Source: Macrostomum lignano (Eukaryota). Taken from it: DNA of 31,182 nt. This document shows, piece by piece, positions 350-31,182 of this stretch. The notes below the pieces were generated by a model. That model ran no database searches and was not told the origin of the DNA. It saw only the letters and a list, made by a program, of their open reading frames with translations. Within the stretch, counting starts at the first letter, position 1. Every line of letters begins with the position of its first letter. The position numbers and the translations under genes were made by a program. Where the stretch lies: contig NIVC01004927.1 in the NCBI GenBank assembly GCA_002269645.1, forward strand, positions 1-31,182, in the 5' to 3' direction.

Positions 350-3300
350 CTTGTAAGGACTGGCGGGTGTCGGAGACAATTGAGTAATTGTAGAAGACAT
401 TGTAGAACGGGTTGGAGCAGCTCAGATGTTGCAGAACATCTGCAATTAATCAAGTCAAGGATCTGACCCAGCTTCAATGACAGTCTCTGCATCAACCTAG
501 ATCAAGAATCTGACCCAGCTCCAATAACAGTCTCTGCATCAACCCAGATCAAGAATCTGAGCCAGTTCCATCTGACCCAGCTCCAATGCTTCAATGAGTC
601 TTTGCATCAACCTAGATCAAGTCGGTCGTCTCACCGGCCTCAGTCTGGCACAGGATGTGGCCTCTGAAGGAGCCGCAGTCAACTGCAGTCCAGGCCTCTT
701 CAGTCAGCCTGGTGGCAGCGCAGGCGCCCGCCGCCGAGGGCTCCCCGATGCTCCAGTGCGCCCAGGCTCCCAGGCTGCTGTTGGTCGCCTCAGACAGCCA
801 CTGGCCGCTGCTGGAGTTGAGCACTGCGCCAACATGAAACCTGAGGTCGCTGGGCTGCGAGCTGAAGCCGCTGCGGGTGCACAGAGTTGGACGAGTTTGT
901 CAGTGAGAGGATGGCATAGTGCTGGGTTAAAGCAATGCGAGCGATTCTGGCATACAGCGAGTGATCGATGAAGGCCAGCTTCAGAGCGGTGTAGTCAGCG
1001 TATGAAGTAGGCAGGAAGAGTCCGCCAGGCCGGTCCCAGTTGAGGCTGCCGCAGTAAGCCTTCGCCACTTCGCGCGCGACTCCCGGAGTTCCGTCCGCAA
1101 AGTGGTGGCGGCAGCGGCCTTCGAAGTAGTAGAAGTTCACAGGGCAATCTGTAGAATGGCGCATGTTTGATTGAAATCTTGTGAATAAATGACAGGTAAA
1201 AAGATTTAAAACTGTGGCTTACCTCCCGATGGACAGCCGTATAAAGTGTTGATGGCCAAATTATGTATCTCAGATGCGTTTCCCAGTATCTTTCCGCTCT
1301 TGGCAATAAAAGTTTGATTCAGCCAAATACGGTTGATTACGCGAAAAGTCTAAAAACATCGTTAATAGTGAAGATTGTTTAAATAATCAAGTATAGCGAG
1401 TATCTAGTATCTATCGGATTAATGGAATGGCTACATACCAAAGTGCTGTCGCTTCCATTGACAGACAATTGAAGAGCAGCCTCCGAAACTGTGAGATGAG
1501 CGCTTACAGTTAGGTTAGTGAGGTAATGTCTTTTCTGCAGCTCGAATTCAAGAACAAGCAAATCGGTTGCAGAAGCGAATGTAGTATTGAAAGCAGTCGA
1601 AGATAAAGTTGGACATTCTGAAAGCAAGAGGACACTCACTGTTTAAATTTAGCTTACGGAGATTCACCCAATTAGCCATTAGCACAAACTCACGGAGATC
1701 ACTCAATTTATAGCTACTATCAGTGAAACTGCACTTACCTACAGGAAACCCGACGACTCCAACTGTCAGTAGAGCGTCTCCATAGAAACTGACAGGTGTC
1801 AGGACCAGGAACTTTGCCACTACAAAATCCGGCAGATCTTCCACAAAACTCACATTGGAAATGACTGAACCCAGCAATTCTTTGTCTGGAATGCCTGCCC
1901 TGGGCACTTCCTGAAGCTGGGAGTCGTCATGAGTTCCATAGTGCAGTCTGTACTGATTCAAACAAGATCCATTGATCCCGGGAGTAACAATGGAAAACAC
2001 TTGATGAGAAACCGGGAATGTGATGCGGACGGAGGCATTCACAGGTAGCTCAAAGGCTGAGCCACTACTCAGCAGCAGGGCGGCAGGCCCGCGTTCCCAG
2101 CTCGCACTGGAGGGCCGGCGCACCGTGACCTGGTGCGGCGCCACCGGCACGAAAGGCGCCTCAGGCAGCGACTCGGGAGAGCAGCCGAACAGCTCAAACT
2201 TTCCGGCAAACCGGCCAACCACTCGCAGTGGGTAGATGCGGAAATGGCGGCCGATGACAGGGTTGGGTAGTTGCTCGATCGAGGTTATGCAGCTGTTTGG
2301 GTAGTCCGCAGGTCCGTGCAGAACCTGCATGATAGGTGATGAATGAGCCTGTTGTCATAGCTCAGTAATAACTGAAGTATTCAATGAATGCTAGTAGTCC
2401 ACTTTCACAACACTTACGGAGGGCGCCAAGCCCCAGAATGTTCCGCTACGAGAGTACATCAGTACATAAGTGACTGCTGCCTCCCTTGCGAGTCCAGTTA
2501 GACAGTAGATACCGGACATTGCAACAGCTCGAATTCTAGCTTGCGTCTGGAGGGTGATTTGAAGCCACTCATCCAGACCGGCGGATGCTGCTCTAAAGAA
2601 GCCGAAGGTCCCGACCGGAGCGTCTGAAATATTGTACAAATAAAGAGAATGGAGTATGCAGACAATCAGGCGAAAAACTAAAACCATGATTAATGGTGTG
2701 AGTGACGGTAGGGTAGTCATAATCATAATCAATTCTAATGGGTTAGTCGAACAGGGATTGTTAGCCTGCCAATGATTCCTTTAAACTTTACATTTAAAAT
2801 GAAGTTAGTAAACTTTTACTAACTTTTAGTAAAGATTTTTGTTAAAACATTAGGCAGAAGCTTTGTAAGAAATCGGTTACTGCAAGTATAGCGATAAACG
2901 AATATGAAGCAATTGTCTCACAAAATTTGAAAAAAATCAAACTTGAACGAATCTTGTATTATAAAACAAAATATGAAAATTAAGGGCATATAAAACTTTA
3001 AAGGCGATTAAAAAGCTTTTGAAGAGAATAGACTAGAGAATCGGTCATTGGTGTTCTGTGTTGAATTCTCACTTTATGATGCACATTTAGAAGTTTAAAT
3101 GCATGACAAATACGAACTATAGCAACCAATCACGGGAATGTCCCATGAAATCTTGTTGGTAAGGTTACCTTAGAAAATTAGAAGCCAAATAGAAGTTTGC
3201 TTACTTGGAGAGTAAAACCTGAACGATACGTGCTCAGGCGGGTAGCCTGGAAGGCTTGACTTAGAAGTGATGCTGGACACCATCACAGTTGCGTTGTCGT

Positions 3301-31182: not shown

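Follow-up and report, generated by a model that had tools for sequence, protein, structure and literature searches.

A large mosaic gene of discoidin and C-type lectin-like modules, with an old internal block duplication and a broken reading frame, in a contig of the flatworm Macrostomum lignano

Giant repetitive adhesion proteins have been described from the flatworm Macrostomum lignano, in which Mlig-ap1 and Mlig-ap2, of 5,407 and 14,794 aa respectively, carry large internal repeats; Mlig-ap1 has a C-type lectin domain and the other domains of these proteins are vWD, TIL, EGF, LDL and TSP-1, together with KR-rich regions (PMC6410801). A second point of reference is sea urchin Nectin, a protein of 984 aa with six near-identical (47–55%) discoidin repeats (PMC10057474). 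Here we analyse contig NIVC01004927.1 of the M. lignano assembly GCA_002269645.1, a stretch of 31,182 nucleotides referred to below as the window. On balance we read it as an internal slice, of about 31 kb, that holds most of one very large many-exon metazoan gene encoding a mosaic of discoidin (F5/8C) and C-type lectin-like (CTLD) modules.

With Mlig-ap1 and Mlig-ap2 the predicted protein would share its giant size, secretion and repeated organisation, and with Mlig-ap1 also a CTLD, whereas neither F5/8C nor kringle domains are listed for those proteins (PMC6410801). Neither of them was among the matches of homology searches with the window exons, and no further sequence comparison was made. 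Nectin, sea star Sfp1 and other invertebrate adhesive or matrix proteins show a similar scheme of a secreted repetitive F5/8C chain combined with lectin-type domains and glycosylation potential (PMC10057474), but no vWD, EGF or SUEL domain was seen in the present protein and, compared with Nectin by domain content, the repeating unit is here a ten-module block of about 1,100 aa, at 21–36% identity, with CTLD, kringle-like and unclassified modules. The best solved relatives of two of the F5/8C modules, Fb2 and Fa2, are lactadherin (MFGE8), the C domains of factors V and VIII and neuropilin b1/b2, which employ one or two C domains to bind membranes or ligands, whereas several modules lacking the flanking disulfide occur here. 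For the first CTLD, C0, the best solved relatives are snaclecs (the snake-venom IX/X-binding proteins) and lithostathine/Reg; these also lack the EPN/QPD–WND signature considered below but are small single-domain proteins, whereas here a CTLD closes each repeat unit of a giant chain. Finally, the mannose-receptor family (ricin-type and FNII domains plus 8–10 CTLDs) and polycystin-1/REJ ectodomains likewise combine a long ectodomain with a small disulfide-rich module and CTLDs, but the window holds no FNII, REJ, GAIN, PLAT or transmembrane (TM) region and has one CTLD per ~1,100 aa rather than CTLDs in tandem.

The window is eukaryotic genomic DNA of about 46% GC, and coding-like stop-to-stop open reading frames (ORFs) are almost confined to its minus strand. 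A splice-aware dynamic-programming gene finder, trained on the window itself, yielded a minus-strand coding chain of about 55 exons with canonical splice sites across the whole window; donors are GTGAGT or GTAAGT, acceptors are TTTCAG-like and introns are mostly 50–125 nt long. Three short introns are free of stops (9273–9181, 93 nt; 10773–10724, 50 nt; 9833–9783, 51 nt) and are read through by plain ORF calling, which in the case of the first adds about 31 spurious residues to module T2, and early domain searches with T2 carried them. Pfam found nothing on the raw stop-to-stop ORFs because introns split the domains; on a first crude gene model it gave sub-threshold F5/8C matches only, plus-strand ORFs had no Pfam match, and an Rfam scan of the window revealed no RNA family. 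Weak exons at 26320–26943, 14171–15075 and 4697–5074 were rejected as phase-fixing filler of the gene finder, the first group sitting in repeat elements. The hand-curated modules (Table 1) sum to 3,409 aa, and at neither end of the window is there a start or stop codon, a signal peptide or a TM-like segment. An earlier reading made from the letters alone (the sequence-only reading) had likewise put the visible protein at about 3,400 aa with neither terminus, and its block coordinates fit the module map, in which N1 starts at 25744, N2 starts at 12663 and L2 ends at 3481.

Along the minus strand the same order of modules occurs twice, at 25744–12755 (copy 1) and 12663–3481 (copy 2), with a partial copy upstream (copy 0) and a reduced copy downstream (copy T). 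The unit runs N, K, A, M, an F5/8C module (Fa), T, two further F5/8C-type modules (Fb and Fc), a pre-CTLD module (P), the CTLD (C) and a Cys-containing linker (L). Matches between the two blocks in ORF-versus-ORF blastp are collinear and, at relaxed thresholds, copy 1 (25.8–12.7 kb) and copy 2 (12.7–3.4 kb) share six high-scoring segment pairs (HSPs) of at least 25 bits, all collinear and with a chain z of 3.8, against a mean of 0.12 in residue-shuffled controls. Motif pairs quoted in the sequence-only reading correspond to real HSPs (23691–23530 versus 11585–11421 and 22863–22738 versus 10750–10625). When 30 hand-curated modules were compared all against all by Smith-Waterman z-scores, the homologue in the other copy was the best partner for K (z 15.9), M (16.8), A (6.1), T (8.2) and Fb (6.9), while for Fa the partner copy lay at or near the top (Fa2–FaT z 13.0 versus Fa1–Fa2 z 9.6). 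The partial and reduced copies are tied in by P0–P1 (z 9.1), C0–C1 (23.5), C0–CT (12.8) and Fa2–FaT (13.0), and the N segment resembles the N-terminus of the F5/8C-like FcT (z 7.7). The proposed super-repeat, present twice, is thus borne out by the six collinear HSPs and by matched modules that are mostly each other's best partners. The downstream copy had been described as three F5/8C domains and a CTLD; a reduced copy with a CTLD is indeed present, but two F5/8C modules are supportable rather than three.

Protein identity between the copies is 21–36% and collinear, and blastn between them found no similarity at the DNA level. Intron positions and phases coincide wherever they were read by hand, namely at both K exons, the donor of the first M exon, the last Fb exon and the three linker-to-N junctions, which agrees with the many common intron positions that had been claimed for paired domains. 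CI(T/S) followed by a single leftover base closes both K exons, the donor of the first M exon is in phase 0 behind ...LNH or ...MRN, the last Fb exon starts and ends at equal places in Fb1 and Fb2, and the linker-to-N junctions are all in phase 1 (RQ/DCMQPLL, ER/DCYRPLL and CY/AADCDSPLL, the slash marking the junction). As far as sequence comparison can establish it, an old tandem duplication of a 9–13 kb block, as the sequence-only reading had also concluded, is well supported, because the protein similarity is collinear, intron phases are common to both copies and no DNA similarity is left. Such a genomic block would have been duplicated in tandem long ago, with the phase-1 boundaries preserving the reading frame, and divergence would since have brought the copies down to their present protein identity while erasing any detectable DNA identity. 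In its C-terminal half the unit may have been remodelled after the duplication; the region between the last discoidin-type module and the CTLD (Fc/Q/P/CTLD) has one arrangement in copies 0 and 1 and another in copies 2 and T.

Among the F5/8C modules, frame-corrected Fb2 matches lactadherin C2 (E 2.6e-8) and factor V C domains (E 4e-5) in a PDB search. Against Pfam F5_F8_type_C (PF00754), with a gathering cut-off of 28.2 bits, Fb2 scores 27.8 bits (E 3e-6), FaT 26.0 (E 1.1e-5) and Fa2 14.3, and Fa1, Fb1, Fc2 and FcT score none. A custom hidden Markov model (HMM), built from discoidin repeats of the search matches, matched seven segments, exclusively on the minus strand. Judged by the lactadherin alignment and the strand-specific HMM matches, the F5/8C modules are real and the earlier label was correct. 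The CTLDs are, by the same kind of evidence, also real, as had been claimed: against Pfam Lectin_C (PF00059; cut-off 22.6 bits) C0 scores 38.7 bits and frame-corrected C2 26.0, and C0 matches 56 solved CTLDs in the PDB, the best being factor IX/X-binding protein (E 7.7e-10) and lithostathine (E 1.3e-9). C1 (19.6 bits) and CT (13.7) fall below the cut-off but are clear CTLD paralogues, with z values of 10–23.

The combination of EPN or QPD with WND is the Ca-dependent sugar-binding signature of C-type lectins. It occurs in none of the four CTLDs, where the equivalent tripeptides are RPA, QPS, LPS and EPS (placed by PDB alignment for C0 and by eye for the other three) and WND is absent, and the domains are probably not classical Ca-dependent sugar binders. 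The term lectin can consequently be used here as a statement about fold only, and of the earlier description "lectin-like" the fold stands while sugar binding does not, the best PDB relatives also being non-sugar-binding. The flanking discoidin cysteines are both absent from Fb1 and from Fb2, and in C1 one CTLD disulfide has lost the two cysteines that would form it (the C2/C3 pair); these paired losses would fit long-term selection rather than random decay.

The other domain names fared less well. Pfam Kringle (PF00051) gave no match for the K modules at E<=10, and K1 measures 66 aa between its outermost Cys and has no NYCRNPD core. Six Cys occur in both K copies, and a K1+K2 profile found angiostatin (E 0.005), HGF (0.012) and the ROR1 kringle (0.19) as its top PDB matches, over the first 30 residues only, so that the kringle label retains marginal structural matches but neither a Pfam match nor the core motif. 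For F-type lectin, neither T1 nor T2 has a Pfam match and a T1+T2 profile found nothing in the PDB; T2 alone gave one PDB match, eel fucolectin 1K12 (E 0.074), over the DGN...C.HS...W.VDL core. The fucose-binding motif of F-type lectins consists of a His plus two Arg. The His aligns between T2 and 1K12 (CFQHSG versus CTHSSG), whereas the alignment does not reach the Arg positions, which by eye hold other residues. The F-type lectin name is therefore marginal for T, and the A modules, which had been called similar to this family, have no profile support: A1 and A2 match nothing in Pfam or the PDB, and hhalign of A places LLVDxKS.H.I on the WIQVDL...VTG core of F5/8C (E 0.076). Aligned with F5/8C in this way, A, M and T reach E values of 0.06–0.27 only, with short A and T segments on topologically equivalent strands (E 0.06–0.08). 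Two names fall away. The M modules had been called FAMeT-like, but M1 and M2 have no match to Methyltransf_FA (PF12248) at E<=10, none to any other Pfam family and nothing relevant in a PDB profile search; and L0 and L2, which had been called linker or PAN (apple), have no Pfam match.

That the gene is not cleanly open in the assembled sequence had escaped the sequence-only reading. Reading the DNA by hand revealed 9–10 one-base frameshifts at which coding continues in another frame without room for an intron, all of them of the one class in which the assembly lacks 1 nt. All lie within 17.4–4.1 kb, where there are about 5.6 kb of coding sequence, and the ~5.4 kb of coding sequence outside has none. 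In Fb1 they occur near 17276 (between T6 and T8 runs) and near 16512, L1 has a possible shift near 12958, and the N2 exon is one base short for K2. In K2 the Cys4–Cys5 spacing is 29 nt versus 30 nt in K1, at an AAA run near 12196–12205, the 10557 acceptor of the main M2 exon is off phase by one base, the lactadherin alignment runs straight across the Fb2 shift at ~8343–8357, and the CTLD of copy 2 (C2, or CTLD-2) is shifted near 4378, 4215 and 4152. Four of the shifts fall at T6/T8, A3, A3 and A4 runs. The limits of the cluster do not follow module boundaries: three shifts fall in the first CTLD-2 exon and none in the 570-nt exon after it. With nine N inserted, the gene finder returned one continuous ORF of ~3,790 aa, some filler exons included. 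Candidate frameshifts at 29949, 9963 and 885 proved instead to be ordinary introns or contiguous frame. The second C0 exon carries an in-frame TAA at 27768–27770, aligned with the conserved Trp of C1 and lithostathine and lying 6 nt from the junction of a tandem duplication (95% identical). The stretch rich in frameshifts has a 2-kb (TAAC)n array directly upstream of its start.

Close relatives are few. An exhaustive search of 1.84 billion representatives with the 195-aa exon 2324–1740 matched eight proteins, five of which are discoidin-repeat proteins of a generic kind from crinoid, coral and anemone, one a 210-aa metagenome fragment aligned end to end at 29% identity, and two M. lignano fragments with 56–57% identity over the exon end. 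A word-indexed search with one of the fragments, P0004, matched three M. lignano fragments only and thereby added a third. Together the three extend into the next two exons with equal boundaries (42% identity over 158 aa, E 1e-35), and these fragmentary predictions (42–57% identity), with the metagenome fragment, are the only specific relatives. The M. lignano relatives P0004, P0006 and P0010 (UniRef) are 101–140 aa long and bear the names Hydrocephalus-inducing protein homolog, Beta-galactosidase and LAM_G_DOMAIN domain-containing protein, which do not fit their alignments to the end of an F5/8C-like module and the Q/P segment. Accessions A0A1I8GUQ4 and A0A1I8G5R2, together with P0010, denote these fragments.

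Two accounts of the broken frame have to be weighed. The one-base breaks between 17.4 and 4.1 kb would most likely be consensus errors of a long-read-derived stretch following the (TAAC)n array, an explanation favoured by their clustering, single direction and homopolymer contexts, while for the TAA of the upstream CTLD a genuine lesion or an allele is the probable explanation. The lesions could also all be real and the locus a pseudogene that was inactivated recently, such as a paralogue decaying in the genome of a polyploid flatworm, yielding no full-length protein. Real decay is favoured by the nonsense codon, because it replaces a conserved Trp, and is consistent with the number of frameshifts, with the finding of no annotated protein for the locus in a 5.8-billion-protein collection and with M. 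lignano relatives that exist only as short fragmentary models. Neutral decay should, however, be even, in contrast to the confinement of all frameshifts to about half of the coding sequence; shifts of one class only would be expected with a probability of ~0.6^9, roughly 0.01 by our own estimate, under a natural indel spectrum; a single stop was found where several would be expected alongside ten indels; and exons of 150–195 codons are still open.

We place the intact gene with assembly errors, its TAA being a lesion or an allele, ahead of the recent pseudogene, adopting the former with limited confidence and allowing the latter a substantial, though minority, share of the probability. Several observations weigh against the intact gene or our picture of it. 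The TAA is two substitutions away from TGG, cannot be a homopolymer error and is unlikely to be technical in origin, the Fc2-to-P2 junction has no in-phase closure without dubious exons, and function is deduced from domain types only. Moreover, the 195-aa exon query found no full-length homologue among the 1.84 billion representatives, a word-indexed homology search with the window exons gave nothing, several module labels have no profile support, and AlphaFold2 on an alignment of M2/M1 exons was uninformative (pLDDT 35).

It is improbable that the copies represent at least two independent paralogues in tandem, either as genes of their own or as cistrons within a trans-spliced operon, with a CTLD at the end of each. 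Flatworms use spliced-leader trans-splicing, each last CTLD exon reaches a stop within 7–23 codons if its donor is unused, and the L0-to-N1 gap of 1.6 kb holds repeat elements, all of which speak for this rival. However, the splice sites of linker exons L0, L1 and L2 are good, the phase of their junction with the following N exon is equal in all three, the introns between C and L (75–80 nt), L1 and N2 (91 nt) and L2 and FaT (141 nt) leave no room for untranslated regions and promoters, and no copy begins with a Met and signal peptide. An origin of the domains and repeats by chance, from ORFs in non-coding DNA, as the empty Pfam scan of raw ORFs and the sub-threshold F5/8C matches of the crude model might suggest, is refuted by PDB and Pfam E values of 1e-8 to 1e-10 after splicing, HMM matches on the minus strand only, concordant shuffle controls and homologues with equal exon ends.

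Table 1. Modules of the predicted gene in order of transcription, with window coordinates; z, Smith-Waterman z-score.
Feature	Coordinates	Strand	Evidence
Fc0, N-terminal half of F5/8C-like module, copy 0 (partial), runs off window end	30769–31180	-	Open exon in all gene models; H..V....G....(Y/F)VSY motif common to Fc1, Fc2 and FcT; weak z 3.2
P0, short pre-CTLD module	30257–30424	-	P0–P1 z 9.1; HSP 30237–30389 versus 15736–15885, 33% identity
C0, CTLD, exons 30182–29962 + 27884–27655, in-frame TAA 27768–27770	27655–30182	-	Pfam Lectin_C 38.7 bits, E 1.8e-9; 56 PDB CTLD matches, best E 7.7e-10
L0, Cys-containing linker exon joining copy 0 to N1 in phase 1	27332–27574	-	Acceptor/donor scores 8.0/4.6; no Pfam match
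N1, F5/8C-type N-terminal segment (DCMQPLL...)	25622–25744	-	Versus FcT N-terminus z 7.7; N1–N2 z 3.1
K1, 6-Cys kringle-like, exons 25545–25414 + 25207–25127	25127–25545	-	K1–K2 36% identity, z 15.9
A1, unclassified ~150-aa beta-type module, exons 23735–23502 + 23418–23195	23195–23735	-	A1–A2 z 6.1; no Pfam/PDB match
M1, unclassified, exons 22947–22747 + 22072–21745; last residues begin Fa1	21745–22947	-	M1–M2 z 16.8; no Pfam/PDB match
Fa1, F5/8C, exons 21377–21295, 21199–21056, 20643–20489	20489–21377	-	Custom HMM match 20604–20509, E 0.015; Fa1–Fa2 z 9.6; Fa1–FaT z 9.9
T1, F-type-lectin-like, exons 20382–20187, 19915–19776, 19696–19603	19603–20382	-	T1–T2 26% identity, z 8.2; no Pfam match
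Fb1, F5/8C-type, exons 17449–17086 + 16602–16453, frameshifts near 17276 and 16512	16453–17449	-	Fb1–Fb2 z 6.9; last-exon ends as in Fb2
Fc1, F5/8C-like half module	16178–16374	-	Splice scores 4.1/8.5 (strong); weak paralogy
P1 + C1, pre-CTLD + CTLD, exons 15876–15584 + 13337–13126	13126–15876	-	Lectin_C 19.6 bits (below 22.6 cut-off); C0–C1 z 23.5; direct splice phase-compatible
L1, linker exon, possible frameshift near 12958	12755–13047	-	Joins N2 in phase 1 across 91-nt intron
N2 (DCYRPLL...), exon 1 nt short for phase needed by K2	12548–12663	-	N1 123 nt, 1 base over; N2 116 nt, 0 over, K2 needs 1
K2, kringle-like, exons 12467–12339 + 12236–12163, frameshift in AAA run near 12196–12205	12163–12467	-	Donors at K1 position and phase
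A2, exons 11609–11399 + 11198–10962	10962–11609	-	A1–A2 z 6.1
M2, exons 10799–10774, 10723–10634, 10557–10080, 1-nt phase defect at 10557 acceptor; last-exon tail begins Fa2	10080–10799	-	Matches M1 exon starts and Cys distance (19 aa) only with one base added
Fa2, F5/8C, exons 10005–9834 + 9782–9614	9614–10005	-	Custom HMM E 0.0027; Pfam F5_F8_type_C 14.3 bits; neuropilin-2 b1 E 0.08; Fa2–FaT z 13
T2, F-type-lectin-like, exons 9498–9274, 9180–9026, 8929–8842 (in-frame 93-nt intron 9273–9181)	8842–9498	-	Sole PDB match eel fucolectin 1K12, E 0.074; no Pfam match
Fb2, F5/8C, exons 8737–8552, 8436–8238, 8143–7999, frameshift ~8343–8357	7999–8737	-	Lactadherin C2 E 2.6e-8; Pfam 27.8 bits, E 3e-6
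Fc2, F5/8C-like, exons 7927–7731 + 7472–7343	7343–7927	-	Weak custom HMM matches; splice scores 7.2/6.3 and 10.2/2.8
P2 + C2, pre-CTLD + CTLD, exons ~4561–4140 + 4049–3811, frameshifts near 4378, 4215, 4152	3811–4561	-	Frame-corrected Lectin_C 26.0 bits (above cut-off)
L2, linker exon	3481–3735	-	Splice sites/gene model; no Pfam match
Downstream reduced copy, FaT (3339–3205, 2623–2418, 2324–~2170) + FcT (~2170–1739), two F5/8C-type	1739–3339	-	Pfam F5_F8_type_C 26.0 bits, E 1.1e-5; custom HMM E 5e-4 and 1e-4; exhaustive search matches P0002, P0004, P0006
QT/PT, unclassified ~100-aa segment, exons 1617–1439 + 1349–1223	1223–1617	-	42% identity to Macrostomum lignano P0010, equal exon ends
CT, CTLD, exons 1148–956 + 870–635	635–1148	-	Lectin_C 13.7 bits only; C0–CT z 12.8, C1–CT z 10.6
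Unclassified tail exons 439–189 + 86–1, running off window	1–439	-	Gene models; no Pfam match

Several repeats lie in the introns. An element of 2.1 kb at 5203–7298, in the long intron between Fc2 and the CTLD-2 exon, has 87-nt terminal inverted repeats (95% identical), with a direct duplication of TAAAAC on its flanks, and has the appearance of a non-autonomous DNA transposon; its plus-strand ORFs (5310–5882 and 6099–6761) have no Pfam match. The 1.6-kb intron between L0 and N1 contains a cluster of inverted and direct repeats at 26117–27126 (26117–26375 versus 27126–26861, 73%; 26354–26427 versus 26712–26638, 89%; 26356–26485 versus 26507–26637, 86%) that is probably another mobile element, and weak exons proposed there by the gene finder are not credible. 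Two duplications have generated pseudo-exons. A tandem duplication of 516 nt (27776–28291 and 28320–28817, 95% identity) comprises a (CTGA)n array, intron sequence and the 5' part of the second CTLD-0 exon, giving a truncated pseudo-exon, and a 127-nt direct duplication (13297–13423 and 13690–13816, 95%) covers the acceptor region and first 41 nt of the last CTLD-1 exon, giving a second. Simple intronic repeats include a (TAAC)x501 microsatellite at 17556–19555, two (CTGA)n arrays at 28020–28293 and 28553–29595 with 3–5% indels, a minisatellite of 21 copies of a 21-mer at 23950–24392, which reads as a false GTHFSAA protein, and 2.5 copies of a 47-mer at 455–570.

As to function, the curated modules contain 49 N-glycosylation sequons against a shuffle expectation of 24.4 +/- 4.4, a twofold excess. 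A secreted or cell-surface location, as a large extracellular mosaic protein, is plausible because the discoidin and CTLD modules were validated, sequons are enriched and there is no TM segment. The polycystin-1-like or adhesion-receptor nature suggested by the sequence-only reading found no backing, as REJ, GAIN/GPS, PLAT and TM regions are all absent from the window, both gene ends lying outside it. From its domain types, sequons and lack of a TM segment the protein may be a long, multivalent binding molecule whose single chain carries numerous weak sites, on beta-sandwich modules and on CTLDs, and putative roles, suggested by the domain types, would lie in matrix, mucus, adhesion or non-self recognition. 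A bolder possibility, about which we are doubtful, is an intact and expressed giant binding protein of the flatworm lineage, with K, A, M and Q/P representing families not yet in Pfam or the PDB within a super-repeat of ~1,100 aa, and possibly a new component of mucus, adhesion or non-self recognition.

The gene in the window is an ordinary one for a mosaic protein, and it has either been assembled poorly or died recently. Large discoidin and lectin-type mosaic proteins are common in invertebrates, and the find is unsurprising in kind and mainly of practical value. The ~13-kb stretch with one-sided single-base gaps is apparently residual long-read error and matters for annotation of this assembly. 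The module map covers about 3,400 aa that were overlooked or fragmented by automated annotation, its M. lignano relatives being misnamed fragments of 101–140 aa. The modules M (z 16.8) and K (z 15.9), strongly self-similar and without family assignment, could seed new domain models, and the locus provides a clean example of block duplication with conserved intron phases.

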